The position numbers and the translations under genes are program-made. The notes below the pieces were generated by a model. The model saw only the letters and a program-made list of their open reading frames with translations. It did no database searches and was not told where the DNA came from. A stretch of DNA of 63,828 nucleotides, counting the filler, from Choristocarpus tenellus KU-1152 (Eukaryota; Protista; Phaeophyceae): assembly GCA_964200185.2 (NCBI GenBank). It is 10 parts of 10 records of this genome, joined end to end, with 100 filler letters (N's around TTAATTAATTAA, not from the genome) between each part and the next. Parts side by side here need not be neighbours in the genome. Positions count along the whole stretch, not along the records: positions 1 to 13,482 come from CAXNAD020001477.1; 9 more parts are not named here. One strand, written 5' to 3'. Of the stretch, positions 2,040 to 11,095 are shown piece after piece; within the stretch, counting starts at the first letter, position 1; each line of letters begins with the position of its first letter.

Positions 2040-4166
2040 ATGGGGGATCTAACCCTAAATTTGCTTGGACTCTTGGTGGAATGGGGGTGGATTGAGACCG
2101 AATACATCAAGCGCCTTCAGTTGGCTAGCTTGAGTGTCTGCATCGAATGTCGGAGAGAGGACTTGGCATTCCACTTGCGAGTTACAAAAGACACACCATC
2201 CTACCTGATTGAAGACAGAGAGTACTCGCAGGACGCAGATGAGACAATCAGATCATCCCGTGTGCCCACTTTACGTATTCGAGAGCTAACTTGGGAGCTC
2301 AGCTATCTGACACCCAGCAATAATGCCAACCAGATCTCTCGGTGTGTGAAATGGCCTTGTTATCCCCAGAAGATCAATCTTGGACGTAAAGTGGGAGGGA
2401 AAATGATCGGAATGGCGTGGGCAGCGGGACTCCAGTACTTGACATTTGGAACTCGGTTCAACGCAAGGTTGGATGGGATCGTGTGGCCGCCACATCTTCT
2501 GAAAATCACCTTTGGAGCTGCCTTCAATCAGCCCGTAGAACAGATTTTGTGGCCGCAAAAGCTTCAACACCTGAAATTTGGGCACGACTTTGATCAAGCT
2601 GTGAACCAGGTTATATTGCCAGCAGGACTTCATCACCTTGTTTTCGGATCAAACTTCAACCAAACTGTGGTTGCCACTGTATGGCCGGAAGGACTCGAGG
2701 AGCTGACATTTGGAGCACAATTCAACCAGTCTTTATATGGAGTTGTGTGGCCGGTGGGGCTCCAGAGGTTGACGTTCGGATGTAAATTCGACCAGGATGT
2801 CATGGGGGTGGTCTGGCCAATAGGACTCCAGGAATTGAATTTGGGATGCGATTTCGATCGAGAGGTGGTAGGGGTGGTGTGGCCTCCAGGTCTGCAACAA
2901 TTGACGTTCGGGTGTGATTTCGACCGGGGAGTTGTCGGGGTAGAGTGGCCACCAGGCCTCCGACAGTTGAGCTTTGGACGTAACTTCAATCAGGTGTTGG
3001 TTGGGGTGGTGTGGCCCGTAGGACTCCAGCAACTGACTTTTGGGTGTAACTTCAATCAGATGGTGGTTGGAGTGGTATGGCCGGAAGATCTTCAGCAGTT
3101 AACGTTCGGAGAACATTTCAATCAGGTGGTAGAGGGAATGGTACTGCCAGCTGGACTTAAGAAACTGACCTTTGGAGATCAGTTTGACCAGGAGGTAGCT
3201 GGGGTGGTGTGGCCAGAAGGACTTCAGGAACTATCATTTGGGTATTACTTCAATCGTGCAGTGAAGGACGTGAAATGGCCAGCAGGTCTCCAGCAATTGA
3301 CGCTTGTAGGTCACTTTGACCAGGATGTTCGAGGGATGGTGTGGCCAGCAGGCCTTCAGCGTGTGAGTTTTTCGAATTCCTTCAACCATCCAGTGATTGA
3401 TGTGGTGTGGCCAGAAGGTCTCCAGCACGTGGAATTTGGAACACATTTTGTCCAGCCTGTGCGCGGCGTAGTGTGGCCAGCAGGCCTTCAACAGTTGCAT
3501 TTTGGAATGTTGTTCAATGAGGCAGTGGAAGCAACAGTGTGGCCTGCAGGGCTGCGGAAAATAGTATTTGGGCGAAAGTTTGACCGGACTGTGAAGGGTG
3601 TGAAGTGGCCAGAGGGACTTGAACTGTTGGTTTTTGGAGCCAGATTCAACCAGCCGGTGGAAAGCGTGGTATGGCCAGAGGGACTATGTGAACTGCACTT
3701 TGGACAGAAGTTCAACCAACCAGTGGGTGATGTAGTATGGCCAACAGGTCTTAGGAAGCTTTTCTTTGGCTCCACATTCAATCAGGCTGTGAGAAGGGTG
3801 AGGTGGCCAGACAAGCTGCAGCAGTTGATATTTGGTTGTGATTTTGATCAGGAGATTGAGGGTGTAATTTGGCCATCGAGTCTTCAACAACTGACTTTCG
3901 GAGCATGCTTCAACCATGCTGTGGAGGGTGTGGTGTGGCCAGAAGAGCTTCGACAACTAGTCTTTGGAACACGCTTCAATCAACCAATGGATAAGGGAAA
4001 ATGGCCAATTGGGCTCCAGCAGTTGACCTTTGGACGTAACTTTTGCCAGGATGTGCGAAGGGTGCAATGGCCAGCAGGACTTGAGCAGCTGACCTTTGGG
4101 TTGCTGTTTAAACAAGAGGCAGAGGCAATGGTTTGGCCAACAGGGCTCAACCTGATGTTTATTTGA
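2040..4166 (+). CDS. Intronless FNIP/IP22-type leucine-rich-repeat protein, 708 aa
   Basis: Uninterrupted ATG-to-TGA ORF. A 104-aa N-terminal region is followed by tandem 22-aa units with consensus WPxGLQxLxFGxxFNQxVxGVV. Confidence 0.95.
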   Translation: MGDLTLNLLGLLVEWGWIETEYIKRLQLASLSVCIECRREDLAFHLRVTKDTPSYLIEDREYSQDADETIRSSRVPTLRIRELTWELSYLTPSNNANQISRCVKWPCYPQKINLGRKVGGKMIGMAWAAGLQYLTFGTRFNARLDGIVWPPHLLKITFGAAFNQPVEQILWPQKLQHLKFGHDFDQAVNQVILPAGLHHLVFGSNFNQTVVATVWPEGLEELTFGAQFNQSLYGVVWPVGLQRLTFGCKFDQDVMGVVWPIGLQELNLGCDFDREVVGVVWPPGLQQLTFGCDFDRGVVGVEWPPGLRQLSFGRNFNQVLVGVVWPVGLQQLTFGCNFNQMVVGVVWPEDLQQLTFGEHFNQVVEGMVLPAGLKKLTFGDQFDQEVAGVVWPEGLQELSFGYYFNRAVKDVKWPAGLQQLTLVGHFDQDVRGMVWPAGLQRVSFSNSFNHPVIDVVWPEGLQHVEFGTHFVQPVRGVVWPAGLQQLHFGMLFNEAVEATVWPAGLRKIVFGRKFDRTVKGVKWPEGLELLVFGARFNQPVESVVWPEGLCELHFGQKFNQPVGDVVWPTGLRKLFFGSTFNQAVRRVRWPDKLQQLIFGCDFDQEIEGVIWPSSLQQLTFGACFNHAVEGVVWPEELRQLVFGTRFNQPMDKGKWPIGLQQLTFGRNFCQDVRRVQWPAGLEQLTFGLLFKQEAEAMVWPTGLNLMFI
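2352..4163 (+). repeat. Coding tandem repeat: 27 x 66 bp plus a 10-aa partial unit
   Basis: From W105, 27 units of exactly 22 aa end at residue 698, followed by WPTGLNLMFI. No indels; the first unit is degenerate. Confidence 0.95.
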
Positions 4167-6567: not shown

Positions 6568-9500
6568 ATGAAGCTACACATAGAGGGAACGGGAGTTTTG
6601 GGATTGGCACTTTTGCTTGGGAGTCAGGCTAATGCAGCTTTCTCCGGCCCCACAGTCTCTGTATTGATTAAGGATCTGTCAATGCCCGATGGGATTCGCT
6701 CCCTCAACTTGCAAGGTCCGTGCACGTAAATGGCACAGCTAGTCACCAATTTACAGGATGCACATGGCGCTTTCACGCTTACTGTAGATGCTTTGAAGCT
6801 CTTCATTGCCCACATCCATTCCCTGCACATGCGCAATAAGGACTGTGCCTCAGGATATAGAAGGTTTGATATTGTTTTGCCTTCTGATTTCTTTGGTTTT
6901 GCCCCCCACTGGAGAGACCATTGTTGGTTGGTTGCACTTTTGTTTGTTAACAACTACAATGACGCTGTCCTATAACTTGCCCAAAGAGATTGGATTCCAG
7001 GGACTTCAGTTCTCGAGCTCATTGCGGATTTGAAGTGAGAAGTACGTGATCATTACCTTCATGAACGATCTTGCCAGGGCGAGGAGTCAACAGCTTGTAT
7101 TAATAGCCGTCCCCCCAACCAGTCGAATCTCCATAACAAATTTAGATAATTTAATCTCAACCTATCGCCGAACCGACCATTTATGTTTTCCTCGCGATGT
7201 CTTCCTGACGGTCGTCACCACTGGGTTTTCTTGCAACGCGATTGTTCTGTCCGCTCCACCTCCACTTTCTCCAGGGAACTATGACATGCAACTGTCGGAT
7301 GACGTTACCGCTAAGATGGCCTATTCCTTCAACAAAGATCGCTTTATGCCATCTGGACTGAGCGCCACGACGTTCACCGACACGTCGGCTGGGAGACTCT
7401 TCAGCACCTTTGCTGTGGACCCTCAGGTAGAAGAGACGGCACAGGAGTATGGGTTATAAGGGTAGGGGCTTGGCTGCACCTTCCCTATCCCTAAGAGTAA
7501 GGAAAATGGGTCACCATTTTGGTCAGTTCGTTATCCAGTCAGTGCCAGAAACGTGACGGATTGGCAATTCGGCTTGTGGTAACTGGCAGAGAAGGAGGCC
7601 TAACCCCGACCAGGCGGTTTGTGCTGTCGATCATTCATCATAAGTTGAACTAAGGCAAACATAACAGGGAGTAGAAGTACTTGTTACTGTGTTTGTATAT
7701 TTGACTATGTGCTGTAGCCAAGATTTGCCTTTAAAAAGGGTTGAGGTGCTACCGCGCAACTCTGCCATACCGGAACAATTTTTTTGACTGTTGAGTTGAG
7801 GTTGTGATTGCTGGAGCAGGACAGGTCTAGGGCAGTAAGTTCAGTGGAGAAATACCTCTCCTGTAGAGCCTAGACTTGAAACCAATGGGTTGGAATATAC
7901 CTGAGCTTGTTATGTTGTGCAGTTCCTGCATTAATCCAAATGTCCCATTTGACAAATTGTATGGTCTCCTTTTGGTTTGTTGCCATTAATCCTCCACCCT
8001 TTCAGGCAAAGAAAGCCACCTTGGACGCCACTGTCCTCAACAGTGACTATGGGACTTTTTCGACCTCCTATGTTGCGGATGGAAAGGTTGGTGCTTGCGG
8101 ATATATGTTTACTGTTTTGCATTTGTGTGTAAATTGCTTAGCTCACCTTAGTTTCCTTGTGTGAGTGGCGGACATTGTCAGAACTGTGGGGATTCACATT
8201 ACAGTAGCATCATCTGTTCAAGTGAGCCCTTCATGGCAAATCCTTGAAGACACATACGCAGTATTGGATGATGTACTGCAGTGCTGTGAGGCTACTCTTA
8301 ACATTTTGTGTTACCGCAAGATTTCATTTGCATGCAGGGCATAGTGGGTATGATAGGAGAGGATGTGGAGGGTTTGGAGGAAAGGATGAACGCGCAAAGA
8401 TGATCAGAGTGTTGATAACAGTATTTCGGTGCTGATGGTGTCCGGTTTCCAAAGATCTTACCCACTTTACCCACTTTACCCACTTTATTCCATATTTTTT
8501 GCGAGAACTGATGCATTTAGTGCGCTGCGATCATCCCTCTTTTAACAATCGTAGATATCACTTTTTTTTATGTTTTGGTGCAATACGACTTGTGCCAAAT
8601 TGTAATATGCCAAAATATCCTTGTTGGTGTTTTCTTGATTCACACCCCTGTTGAGGAAGTATGATGTGTCGGCACTACTGTGGCTGGGTTTTGATGGTTG
8701 CGTGGAAAAAAATGGTCTCCGTCTATTTTTCCCTCTGGGATCCCGTGGTAACAGAGTCCGAGATAGTTGTGAGCCTTTGCCTATTGTTTCATAGGGTTTT
8801 CCTTGCAAGTTCGTAACAGCAAAGCATGAAAGACCACACTTGGGTTTGAAGTCTGCAATTTTGCCTTACTCTGTGTGCTAGTTGTGTGCTAGTAATATGT
8901 AGTGCTACGTAACCCAACCGGATGAAATGCCACTCATGGTACTGTAGTAGTGTGCAGAGTGCAAACATACTGCTATTATATTGAAGAACTGAGGTGTTGA
9001 TTGTCTGACTGTTACACCAAAGCACTTTTTTCTCCCGTAGAGTGTAGTCTTCCTGCTTCAAGCATTAATTCAAGGGATCAAGTTGATGCTTGCCATTGTT
9101 GTCCTTGTAACATGTCCCCTTCCCTCCCATCCCCTCCCTGCAAAACTCGCACTTTGCACTCCAACTCTTCCTTCTCCCCCTTGTTGGGATGGGCGGATTG
9201 GACGGATATGACCAGGAAGGGGGACGATTTGGTCCGTTGATGTGGAAGAGTCTCCCAATGCCCTTTCCCTTTGCCAAAATTGGCAAGCCGAGGCCCATGT
9301 CAATGAGTGTCAAGCATGACATTGCTGCTAAGAGTGTCACTATCAACATGGCTGCTAGCATCTGTGACAATTTTGATGCCAAGCTGGACCTGTTACCTGA
9401 GGGGGAACCTGTGGTAACTCTTATTGGCTCCCGCAGGTATTATTTCATGCTATGTTGATCTTTCACTGAGTACGATATGGGAGATGATTATTCTTCTCAC

Positions 9501-11095
9501 TCAAGAAAGTGTTGGCGGAAGATTTTTAGGGTTCAGAAATGCCAACTGTCCATCACGAGTTGTGTCTGTCAAGTGTGAATGGAAGGAATACTCTGGGACA
9601 TGTGAGAATTGAGTAATTGTAATCACAATCATGACAAAAGAGTGGAAGAATTGACTTCCTCCGGGATGAACATCAGTTACTGTTTTTCCTAACCTACCCC
9701 ACAGCTGCTTGAATCTGTAGTGTGTATAGTGAAAAAAATATAATTTTTTGTGCATTTGTGTGTTTGTGCAGCAACACAAGGGATGCAGACCTTCCATGTT
9801 GTAGGAGATAAAACCCTTCAGCAAGGTTCACCTACTGCTATGCTACCCAATATTCCAATCCTCTTTCCCCTGCCCATGCTACTCTTCCCACTAGATCACC
9901 AATCCATCTCCAACTCCTCACACTTCTTCTTCCCCTCTTCTTGCCCACATCTCTTGCCCAGGCTAGACAAAGACTCTGTAGTGAGGGCATCTGGTAGCAT
10001 GCTTGATCTCCTTAATTCCGGGGTGGGCAAGGGAGCCTTGGGAGTCGCCTACTCAAGGGATCTGGATACAGGATCGGTCAGTGTCCTGCCCCTTCTCCTA
10101 CTTCAAGTATGCTTGCCTGTTTTTGTCGTATGTGTAGGTGGGGAGGGAAAAGTATCTGTATTTTGATGAACCAATATGTACTGGGTTTGAGTCGTAGTAC
10201 TATTTTTGTGTATTCAAAAGGCCTATATGATTGTTGTACATTGCTTGGTGTTTAGTGGGTTGCAAAATGTGGTTAGACAAGTGACAACAACGGCTTGTTG
10301 GCTCAGTATACGTTTTTGGTCAAGCCCCTCCCGCCCCTCCCTGTGCATTGGCCTGTTTTTCACCTCTTGCTGCTTTGACCTTACTCCCATGCTAAGATAT
10401 ATAGGCTGGCAATTGACATTTCTTTCTTTTGGAGGTGCAGTTTATGTTATTGTCAACACCGTGTCTCAACATTAGAGTACTCTTATCTTGCCTCCATTTG
10501 TAACTATTGAGTGGATTCAGCTGTACAAGATGCTTCATGTACGTTGGTTCAAGCACACGGTCAGCTAGGTGTAGAGACTATTATTGTTGGAGGTGTCTGT
10601 AAGCTCGGGTTTAGTAAAGGTCCATTTTCTCATCCGCACCCCAGTCGAATGGAGGTTTCATTTTCCTCAACCAATACATAACCACTATGTACTGGAAGGG
10701 CTTTAGAAGCACCTGGCATACATAATCTTCACATTTTAATTGTGGTGCCAATATACTCCAGGTTGTGTTCAAATGAAGACATGTGATCAAATTTTGCGTG
10801 CACGGGTCAACCAGGCTGCAGTTTTTGTTTGCAGACAATCCCACTCCTATTACCTTAACTTGCCATCTTCTTTAAGCCCACATGATCTTGCTGAGCCAAC
10901 AGTACCTTCACTCACTTACAGGGATCCTCATCACGCGTGCAGCTTGACACGAGGGACACCGGGGACTTTGCATGGAGCCTCACCAACACCACCCCCCGAA
11001 TGACCTTGGTTTTGTTTGGGAAGGGGAAACTGTGGCAAGGGGGAGAAGGAAAGTTCAGCTCGGTGTCAATCAAGCAAAGCCTGCGACTGTTCTGA
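6568..11095 (+). CDS. 6-exon, 296-aa protein with signal peptide and beta-barrel-like body (candidate plastid-envelope pore). Exons 6568-6715, 7275-7426, 8006-8086, 9216-9436, 9962-10076, 10922-11095
   Basis: All five introns are GT-AG with matching phases (1,0,0,2,0); exon total is 891 nt = 296 aa + stop. N-terminus MKLHIEGTGVLGLALLLGSQANA-AFSGP; C-terminus FSSVSIKQSLRLF. The gene model is well supported; the function is inferred. Confidence 0.8.

Follow-up and report, generated by a model that had tools for sequence, protein, structure and literature searches.

What protein is encoded on the plus strand between positions 6568 and 11095 of the window analyzed here (a stretch of 63,828 nucleotides, filler included, from Choristocarpus tenellus KU-1152, assembly GCA_964200185.2), and to which membrane, if any, is it delivered? 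A preliminary description, made from the sequence alone, had read a six-exon gene for a signal-peptide-bearing beta-barrel at this locus, and proposed that its product is an OEP24/OEP37-like or new porin routed to a plastid envelope membrane. The source organism, a brown alga, is indeed among the stramenopiles that carry a red secondary plastid. Taken as a whole, this interpretation is partly supported by the analysis below.

Gene structure and the overlooked first exon

By reading the splice sites in the sequence, we found six exons with a combined length of 891 nt, i.e. 296 codons and a stop. Exon 1 (6568..6715, on the plus strand like all features below) supplies the start codon and 49 codons plus one nucleotide. 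It is followed by exon 2 (7275..7426, 152 nt), exon 3 (8006..8086, 81 nt), exon 4 (9216..9436, 221 nt), exon 5 (9962..10076, 115 nt) and exon 6 (10922..11095), the last of which holds 57 codons and the TGA stop at 11093-11095. All five introns have GT..AG borders, and their phases are consistent across the whole exon chain. They are intron 1 (6716..7274, 559 nt, phase 1), intron 2 (7427..8005, 579 nt), intron 3 (8087..9215, 1129 nt, with a 9-nt microsatellite at 8458-8487), intron 4 (9437..9961, 525 nt) and intron 5 (10077..10921, 845 nt). Every splice acceptor in the gene reads AG|G, a trait that would suit a dinoflagellate, but such an origin is rejected by the identity of the record. The peptide segments quoted in the preliminary description were all recovered in the frames given there.

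The deposited gene call, P0001 (7286-11095, 243 aa), corresponds exactly to exons 2-6 and was started at an internal Met. Consequently, it is without exon 1 and therefore without the signal peptide. The mature part of exon 1 aligns with the N-terminus of the Hapterophycus orthologue and with those of other orthologues, and the codon formed at the exon 1/2 junction is Gly, followed by Asn-Tyr-Asp, which agrees with a G-N-Y-D conserved in the orthologues. Furthermore, all five intron positions are common to the Choristocarpus and Hapterophycus genes. Judged by these alignments, exon 1 is a genuine part of the gene that the deposited model overlooked, and the six-exon, phase-fitting gene for 296 aa that had been proposed is borne out. 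That the exon chain is a chance succession of reading frames, or a pseudogene, with no functional gene behind it, is hardly credible, given that orthologues align over the full length at 45-53% identity and that the frame is intact across conserved intron positions. A 293-aa kelp-like orthologue is also encoded, as one uninterrupted reading frame, on four Logan contigs of 1.1-1.6 kb, which we read as transcript assemblies.

The neighboring gene is an intronless one for an FNIP-repeat protein. This neighbor raised the question of a giant-virus or phaeovirus origin, which was rejected because the gene under study has five introns at conserved positions; a Foldseek search against viral structures gave no meaningful match. 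No synteny was seen between the Choristocarpus and Hapterophycus loci, and an Rfam search of the whole piece was without matches. The same was true of a scan for bacterial promoters and terminators upstream of exon 1, which is of no relevance for a eukaryote.

Family members and their distribution

The protein is, by sequence comparison, the orthologue of Ectocarpus siliculosus CBJ25771.1 (UniProt D7G778), a protein of 297 aa named "expressed unknown protein". The two have the same length and architecture (a signal peptide followed by a beta domain) and the same C-terminal motif, and CBJ25771.1 is 53% identical to the part encoded by Choristocarpus exons 2-6. A HMMER profile search over 1.84 billion representatives returned 45 matches, and those that were traced proved to be brown-algal models, unnamed Logan/ENA pieces and one Aureococcus protein. 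Profile and word searches added further orthologues in Pylaiella, Ectocarpus, Laminaria, Sphacelaria and Scytosiphon, as well as an additional clade of Aureococcus and environmental sequences. The brown-algal and pelagophyte clades could be aligned by hhalign with a probability of 89% (E 2e-6, 243 columns), and we regard them, on this alignment, as homologous.

Neither the HMMER search nor the profile and word searches found relatives in plastid-lacking lineages, and no homologues were found in diatoms, eustigmatophytes or other ochrophytes beyond brown algae and pelagophytes. Nor was any bacterial homologue found by HMMER among the 1.84 billion representatives. In the databases searched, the family thus appears as an orphan family of brown algae and pelagophytes, i.e. 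of plastid-bearing ochrophytes only, as had been expected for its distribution. In the literature, no paper was found for the Choristocarpus assembly or the Ectocarpus accessions, and none on Ectocarpus beta-barrel porins that describes the family. Some pelagophyte members carry the automatic IMG name "outer membrane receptor for Fe3+-dicitrate".

The pelagophyte clusters comprise dozens of member sequences out of environmental assemblies. Because these clusters are large, the protein may be abundantly expressed in natural pelagophyte populations.

Links to named families were sought with equally sparse results. Searches of Pfam, NCBIfam and PDB sequences gave no match above threshold. In Pfam, the individual exons as well as P0001 and P0002 returned nothing but a spurious 11-residue EGL-1 match, and the PDB sequence searches returned only noise, e.g. 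LCB1 against a probably spurious insert in P0002. A profile search of PDB likewise contained nothing significant, with the KdgM entry 4fqe at E 0.49. Porin_3 of Pfam was not matched at E up to 10 by P0001 and P0002, nor at E up to 1 by 27 family members. KdgM (PF06178) was matched by two of 27 members, with a best E of 0.0023 that lies below the gathering threshold, and DUF5777 gave a similarly weak, sub-threshold echo of a bacterial barrel. The TamB profile was matched by seven of 30 members, again sub-threshold (best E 0.0031). No sequence similarity to the plant OEPs (OEP21/24/37) appeared in the HMMER search over 1.84 billion representatives or in the PDB profile search, and the OEP24/OEP37-like identity suggested earlier consequently found no sequence link to lean on, to these or to any other named family.

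Signal peptide, mature chain and predicted fold

A predicted ER signal peptide spans residues 1-23 (6568..6636), as read from the sequence, its hydropathy and the presequences of relatives. It consists of the n-region MKLHIEGTG, the h-core VLGLALLL (mean Kyte-Doolittle value 3.07) and a c-region ending in ANA, with cleavage predicted before AFSGP. By inspection and hydropathy, an equivalent presequence with the n-h-c layout and an A-x-A site was found in all full-length relatives, in agreement with the signal peptide of the preliminary description.

The Phe behind this signal had been likened to that of the ASA-F motif, a likeness that does not extend to the relatives. Counted from the best A-x-A site of Choristocarpus (ANA|AF), the Phe takes position +2, and a less convincing site would place it at +1. 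Where Choristocarpus has A-F-S-G-P after the signal, the other brown-algal orthologues have G-G, with all 13 of their N-termini reading ...A-x-A|GG and the conserved first strand following directly, and in the pelagophyte members the +1 residue is A, G or D. By this comparison, the post-signal Phe is a peculiarity of Choristocarpus, and not an ASA-F-type motif of the family. According to the ASAFAP rule, an aromatic residue or Leu is found at +1 of the transit peptide, and a transit-peptide-like region is needed for stromal and periplastidal import alike (PMC3101018). The conserved first strand of the brown algae starts within 2-5 residues of the A-x-A site, which upholds the earlier remark that it follows the signal almost directly. 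Counted from the start of this strand, the next 25 residues contain 0-4 K+R versus 2-4 D+E, where a transit-peptide-like stretch is expected to be net positive. This segment is neutral to acidic in charge, and since it is also part of the conserved fold, a transit peptide does not fit the protein as predicted here. Out of the features of the ochrophyte bipartite signal, the ER signal peptide is present, and both conservation of an aromatic residue or Leu at +1 and a transit-peptide-like stretch are absent.

The maximum 19-residue Kyte-Doolittle mean in P0001 is 0.77, in keeping with the claim that there is no transmembrane helix. In the strands of the Choristocarpus protein, hydrophobic and polar faces alternate, and we infer that the mature chain is an all-beta domain of ~270 aa with about 16-19 short amphipathic strands. 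Family members have 0-3 Cys per mature chain, none of which is conserved. All brown-algal members share one N-x-S/T sequon, and no sequon is conserved among the pelagophyte members.

The C-terminal strand is VSIKQSLRLF (11063..11092), where the consensus of the family reads V-S-hydrophobic-basic-x-x-F-x-hydrophobic. Its terminal Phe, which the preliminary description had taken as a mark of strands read by Omp85-family insertases, is indeed present. The classic bacterial beta-signal ends in Phe or Trp and is hydrophobic at 3, 5, 7 and 9 from the end. In the brown-algal end, ...V-S-L-R-Q-S-F-R-M-F, the hydrophobic face falls on 2, 4, 8 and 10 from the end, and the terminal Phe is therefore out of register. 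It is also restricted to brown algae: in the pelagophyte members the last residue is L or V (...F-K-R-K-F-S-L or -K-V), and positions 1, 3, 7 and 9 from the end are hydrophobic.

AlphaFold2 models were made for two distant family members, namely a kelp-like orthologue (model 1) and a pelagophyte member (model 2, ~25% identical). With pLDDT of 62 and 70 (core 70-89) and pTM of 0.48 and 0.53, the models have 13-16 amphipathic up-and-down strands: 15 in model 1, whose core pLDDT is 70-89, and 13 confident ones in model 2 (pLDDT 69.6). The N- and C-terminal strands of both models have pLDDT <50. Almost all of the best PDB matches of both models in Foldseek are membrane beta-barrels, at TM-scores of 0.50 or less. 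The list of model 1 is headed by VDAC, Tom40, LptD and TonB-dependent receptors. The best match of model 2 is VDAC1 (E 3e-4, TM 0.50 over 185 columns, rmsd 4.5 A), with further matches to the Rps. blastica porin (TM 0.42), Tom40, Mdm10 and Omp33.

The predicted cores share with VDAC, Tom40 and Mdm10 a similar size, an up-and-down amphipathic beta-meander and a similar curvature, although these matches are weak (E 1e-4 to 1e-2, TM <=0.50) and there is no sequence similarity. Moreover, those proteins have an N-terminal helix where the present one has an ER-type signal peptide, and VDAC is a closed barrel of 19 strands, as compared to ~16-19 inferred strands with termini modelled without confidence. 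The bacterial porins and KdgM resemble the family in that the first strand comes directly after a cleavable signal peptide and the C-terminus is hydrophobic or aromatic; the core of model 2 is that which resembles the 16-stranded general porin of Rps. blastica. They differ in the register of the C-terminal hydrophobic residues, their sequence matches are all sub-threshold (for KdgM in Pfam as well as PDB), and the Choristocarpus protein is the product of a eukaryotic nuclear gene that is interrupted by five introns. A VDAC/porin-like beta-barrel, with putative closure and a putative lipid-facing belt, is the likely fold according to the models, in which the terminal strands that would close it are poorly modelled. 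Hence, the all-beta character of the earlier beta-barrel claim and its VDAC and porin neighbors stand, the two independent models being closest to VDAC, Tom40, porins and LptD, at moderate model confidence.

Delivery route and competing explanations

The explanation that we propose, and to which we give an even chance, is that the 296-aa precursor combines an ER signal of ~23 residues with a porin-like barrel that resides in a membrane reachable from the ER lumen, acts as a passive pore and travels by a non-bipartite route. The chain would enter the ER lumen, which in ochrophytes is continuous with the chloroplast-ER lumen, co-translationally, and the signal peptide would then be cleaved. The domain would fold into a large, porin-like barrel within a membrane to which the ER or chloroplast-ER lumen gives access. 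Entry into the periplastidal compartment or envelope by the canonical pairing of signal and transit peptide (the bipartite route) would play no part, which would set the protein apart from outer-envelope channels of the usual OEP type. This proposal draws on the gene structure, the orthology, the family-wide signal-like N-terminus, the strand pattern and the membrane-barrel-like predicted cores, together with the lack of conserved Cys, the sub-threshold echoes of KdgM and DUF5777 and the automatic IMG name of some pelagophyte members. Against it stand the moderate confidence of the models, with their poorly modelled terminal strands, the TM-scores of 0.50 or less and the sub-threshold TamB matches. 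In addition, we know of no machinery for inserting beta-barrels from the side of the ER lumen, which counts against an ER-delivered barrel.

The same point favors a soluble or peripheral protein of the secretory pathway, possible though not probable in our estimate, in which the strands form an open curved amphipathic beta-sheet (a beta-groove/taco or a single layer) that either reaches the cell surface or wall by secretion or stays in an endomembrane lumen, and might bind a hydrophobic or polysaccharide ligand. The barrel-like matches would then reflect generic up-and-down beta-meander geometry, and the amphipathicity of the strands is also compatible with a soluble sheet that buries one of its faces. 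Besides its signal peptide, the precursor has neither a retention nor an anchor signal, the sequon is conserved in all brown-algal members, the terminal strands that would close a barrel lack confidence in both models, and the sub-threshold matches of seven of 30 members are to TamB, an open beta-groove protein. However, closed membrane barrels dominate the best 50 PDB matches listed for each model, and no TamB/AsmA or lipid-transfer groove is found among these. Extracellular proteins of eukaryotes do not usually lack conserved cysteines, as this family does, and the sequon is not conserved in pelagophytes. The plastid-envelope porin of the preliminary description, OEP24/OEP37-like or new, with bipartite ASAFAP-type import and insertion by a plastid Omp85, appears quite improbable. 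The porin-like predicted fold, the restriction to plastid-bearing ochrophytes, the Phe just past the Choristocarpus signal and the terminal Phe of brown-algal members are all compatible with it, and ptOmp85 of diatoms illustrates that beta-barrels can reach the complex plastid via the ER (PMC3101018). Against this stand the Gly at +1 in the 13 other brown-algal N-termini (Ala, Gly or Asp in pelagophytes), a conserved fold that in brown algae sets in 2-5 residues past the cleavage site, with 0-4 basic versus 2-4 acidic residues in the 25 that follow, the lack of homologues found in diatoms, eustigmatophytes and other ochrophytes, and the all-protein HMMER search without similarity to plant OEPs. 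With the Phe unconserved and no transit-peptide-like region in the relatives, the routing to the envelope by a bipartite signal is thus not supported. OEP21/24/37 and diatom ptOmp85 are accordingly proposed as functional analogues only, i.e. as beta-barrel solute or protein channels, with no detectable sequence relationship to the Choristocarpus protein.

Very improbable, finally, is a divergent mitochondrial porin of the VDAC/Tom40 superfamily, whose hydrophobic N-terminus would not be a signal peptide. VDAC is the top structural match of both models, and the mature length of ~270 aa is close to that of VDAC (~283 aa), but TM-scores do not exceed 0.5, Porin_3 is matched by no member, and every member has the n-h-c layout and A-x-A site and not an amphipathic helix. 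Furthermore, E. siliculosus already has a Tom40 (PMC3095331).

For Choristocarpus itself, the analysis corrects the deposited gene model, to which exon 1 and the signal peptide are restored. As to the wider family, the passage of small solutes over the two extra membranes of red-derived complex plastids is, to our knowledge, largely unknown, and the only beta-barrel that we know to reach such plastids via the ER is the Omp85/Toc75 import channel. We consider it rather doubtful that the family is a true pore-forming barrel delivered from the ER or chloroplast-ER lumen by a signal peptide alone, e.g. a general diffusion pore of the periplastidial or chloroplast-ER membrane of ochrophytes. If so, the two outer membranes of the complex plastid would gain their first assigned beta-barrel channel, and Sec61 would for the first time be seen to deliver a eukaryotic barrel that lacks a transit peptide. 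If soluble, the family would instead add a new beta-fold to the secreted proteins of brown algae and pelagophytes. A lineage-restricted protein with a predicted ER signal and a porin-like predicted fold is a tangible candidate for cloning and for localization and bilayer tests.

Exon chain and deposited gene model

The gene, situated on the plus strand of CAXNAD020001477.1 from Choristocarpus tenellus, a brown alga that branches early, comprises six exons at 6568-6715, 7275-7426, 8006-8086, 9216-9436, 9962-10076 and 10922-11095, which sum to 891 nt, i.e. 296 codons and a TGA stop. All five introns run from GT to AG, with phases 1, 0, 0, 2 and 0, and have a G+C content of 42-46%, as against 50-56% in the exons. 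The product of the deposited gene call (7286-11095), 243 aa long, is identical to exons 2-6 read from an internal Met in exon 2, so the annotators independently reached the same chain for these exons. The deposited model omits exon 1, and with it both the signal peptide and the first of the conserved strands. Judging from the orthologues, exon 1 is nonetheless real. Its post-signal part is identical to the N-terminus of the Hapterophycus orthologue at 12 out of 28 positions and similar at 22, and the codon split between exons 1 and 2 (G + GG) gives a Gly followed by N-Y-D, matching the G-N-Y-D kept in all orthologues. No upstream start codon was found in the open frame of exon 1.

The Hapterophycus gene has the same five intron positions, plus one extra intron and one extra annotated exon. 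A kelp-like orthologue of 293 aa (P0003), which shares 82% identity with the Laminaria model, is uninterrupted on four contigs of 1.1-1.6 kb from four sequencing runs, which we read as assembled transcripts, implying that the chain is spliced in this way in a relative. With its GT..AG introns, consistent phases, agreement with the deposited product and shared intron positions, the in-phase chain of 296 aa put forward in the preliminary description holds.

Some further features of these genes and of the contig were observed. At all five acceptors (7274/7275, 8005/8006, 9215/9216, 9961/9962 and 10921/10922) the AG is followed by G as the first base of the exon, and intron 3 holds a perfect 9-nt microsatellite (TTACCCACT, 3.3 copies, 8458-8487). 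Non-conserved inserts of 18-35 aa occur at the exon 5/6 junction (9499-9567 in locus L002, from a relative, and equivalents) in models from Hapterophycus, Scytosiphon, several Ectocarpus species, Laminaria and Sphacelaria. The transcript-derived P0003 lacks them, as do the Pylaiella model and Ectocarpus siliculosus CBJ25771.1, and they probably represent micro-exons annotated in error. Elsewhere on the contig, an intronless plus-strand gene at 2040-4166 encodes a 708-aa FNIP-repeat protein (Pfam PF05725, E 4e-73, 19 matched stretches), and at the DNA level has a period of 66 nt and a strongly positive GC skew. A composite inverted repeat at 211-1242, with arms of ~360 nt (211-571 and 880-1242, 78-81% complementary) around a 309-nt spacer, resembles a foldback or MITE-type element, and a related 79-nt direct repeat is found at 578-656 and 1602-1680.

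Distribution of the family

Neither Pfam and NCBIfam scans nor a PDB sequence search, using the exons and full-length members, gave a match above threshold, and by sequence the protein falls into no named family. Since these scans were uninformative and any claim on distribution depends on absence, an all-against-all HMMER search was run over 1.84 billion representatives (E ≤ 1e-3). It returned 45 proteins, mostly exon-sized pieces, the sampled ones being from Logan or ENA assemblies, together with P0003 and one Aureococcus anophagefferens protein. Profile and word searches added two groups, namely full-length orthologues from Pylaiella, several Ectocarpus species, Laminaria, Sphacelaria, Scytosiphon and Hapterophycus, and proteins of 241-291 aa found in Aureococcus and in marine environmental assemblies, the clusters containing as many as 71 member sequences, a possible sign of high expression. 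The brown-algal and pelagophyte clades share ~25% identity and align profile to profile over 243 columns (probability 89%, E 2e-6). No member was found by these searches in diatoms, oomycetes, other eukaryotes, bacteria or viruses.

The A. anophagefferens homologues are tandem copies (7292-9444 and 10001-10777 of its locus L007), and several deposited models (760, 408 and 397 aa) fuse neighboring copies and contain internal signal-peptide-like segments. Some members of the cluster of the pelagophyte protein P0060 were automatically named 'outer membrane receptor for Fe3+-dicitrate' by JGI/IMG, which we take as a barrel-like compositional hit. One short environmental sequence in the family alignment (A5) also matches NRPS/adenylation-domain models (E 2e-17), and is probably a chimeric contig or miscalled ORF.

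Targeting signals

The signal peptide previously proposed for the Choristocarpus protein has a counterpart in every full-length member, where a brief n-region precedes a hydrophobic core (8-residue Kyte-Doolittle mean 1.9-3.9) and a small-x-small site. The Choristocarpus presequence reads MKLHIEGTG / VLGLALLL / GSQANA. An ASA-F-like motif had also been suggested, but the best cleavage site, ANA|AFSGP, places Phe at +2, and Phe is at +1 only at the less favorable NAA|F. The 13 other brown-algal N-termini instead read A-x-A|G-G, directly followed by the conserved first strand (S/T-V-S-V/I-N-I-K-D-L), while those of pelagophytes read T-A-S-A| and then A-K-Y, G-K-Y or D-A-P. Hapterophycus and Scytosiphon have a Trp at -2, within an A-W-A site.

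In diatoms, stromal import is associated with an aromatic amino acid or Leu as the first residue of the transit peptide, and periplastidal proteins lack this residue yet still require a transit-peptide-like sequence (PMC3101018). The little room for such a sequence noted before is evident throughout the brown algae, where the conserved fold begins 2-5 residues past cleavage, the following 25 residues hold 0-4 basic and 2-4 acidic residues, and no transit-peptide-like stretch was found after the signal. Pelagophyte members have a linker of ~7-25 residues ahead of the first strand. Neither a C-terminal ER-retention motif nor a hydrophobic tail is present, and one N-x-S/T sequon is kept in all brown-algal members, not in pelagophytes. 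As judged from sequence, there is thus good support for entry into the ER, but not for subsequent passage through the periplastidial membrane along the known pathway.

Predicted fold and candidate function

Two AlphaFold2 models were built from the family alignment, using distant members as queries. That of P0003 (mean pLDDT 61.5, pTM 0.48) has 15 strands and one short low-confidence helix, with a core at approximately residues 40-200 (block means 60-89, mostly 70-89); that of mature P0060 (residues 17-269; mean pLDDT 69.6, pTM 0.53) has 13 confident strands and no helices, with a core at residues 21-200 (62-89, mostly 72-89). Counting patterned low-confidence terminal segments, we estimate 16-19 strands. 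Foldseek searches of the PDB with the first model gave VDAC1/2, Tom40, LptD, TonB-dependent receptors and a porin (E 1e-3 to 1e-1, TM 0.23-0.35), and with the second VDAC1 at E 3e-4, the best superpositions being on human VDAC1 (6g73) and yeast porin (9jvq; TM 0.50, 185 columns, 4.5 Å). Other matches of the second model were the Rhodopseudomonas blastica porin with its 16 strands (TM 0.42), Tom40, Mdm10, Omp33, LptD and designed transmembrane barrels. The list includes beta-propeller lectins only far down, at TM ~0.2.

Mapped onto the Choristocarpus protein, the strands are two-faced (mean Kyte-Doolittle ~1.0 to 3.4 on the hydrophobic face, -0.1 to -3.4 on the other), apart from one at residues 63-72 with little contrast, and no 19-residue segment of the exon 2-6 product approaches transmembrane hydrophobicity (maximum 0.77), bearing out the alternating, helix-free pattern first described. 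Mature chains have 0-3 cysteines, none conserved. The proposed terminal-Phe strand stands in part: all members share an amphipathic last strand, an aromatic residue lying two or three positions before the chain ends and a hydrophobic one close to that end, but the Phe itself is limited to brown algae (V-S-L/I-R/K-Q-S/T-F/L-R/S-L/M/F-F, one model ending one residue short; V-S-F-K-R-K-F-(S/N/K)-(L/V) in pelagophytes) and is out of register with the hydrophobic face. The strand fits a beta-signal without being diagnostic of one.

The models lean towards a large porin-like antiparallel barrel, which we regard as rather probable. The closest matches are mostly membrane barrels, but at TM of at most 0.50, and each model has pLDDT below 50 over its first 20-35 and last 30-45 residues, i.e. 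the strands whose meeting would close a barrel. This leaves room for a soluble or peripheral secreted protein with a curved beta-sheet, as amphipathic strands alone would also suit a soluble sheet with one face buried; sub-threshold TamB matches point the same way, and we know of no ER-lumen insertase for beta-barrels. No TamB-type groove was however found among the best 50 matches listed for either model, and we consider the soluble sheet somewhat unlikely. That the protein would be translocated into the ER, cleaved of its signal and formed into a porin-like barrel, serving as a passive pore of some membrane accessible from the ER or chloroplast-ER lumen, has in our judgment about an even chance; a location specifically in the periplastidial or chloroplast-ER membrane is rather unlikely.

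The OEP-like plastid-envelope porin originally proposed, imported by a bipartite signal, has become improbable, as the post-signal Phe is confined to Choristocarpus among the members compared and brown-algal members lack a transit-peptide-like stretch. A divergent mitochondrial VDAC or Tom40 would suit the predicted core, but is very improbable given the signal peptide, the lack of a Porin_3 match and the Tom40 already present in Ectocarpus (PMC3095331). An artefact is scarcely credible.

Among characterized proteins, VDAC/Tom40 and bacterial porins come closest to the family, and by structure only. The family has been in databases as 'unknown protein' since deposition of the Ectocarpus genome, CBJ25771.1 (297 aa) being named 'expressed unknown protein', and our literature search found no published description of it. 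A plastid pore is a hypothesis that the comparative targeting signals weaken. What is new is the pairing of an ER signal peptide with a predicted VDAC/porin-like barrel, in a family confined to two classes of ochrophytes.
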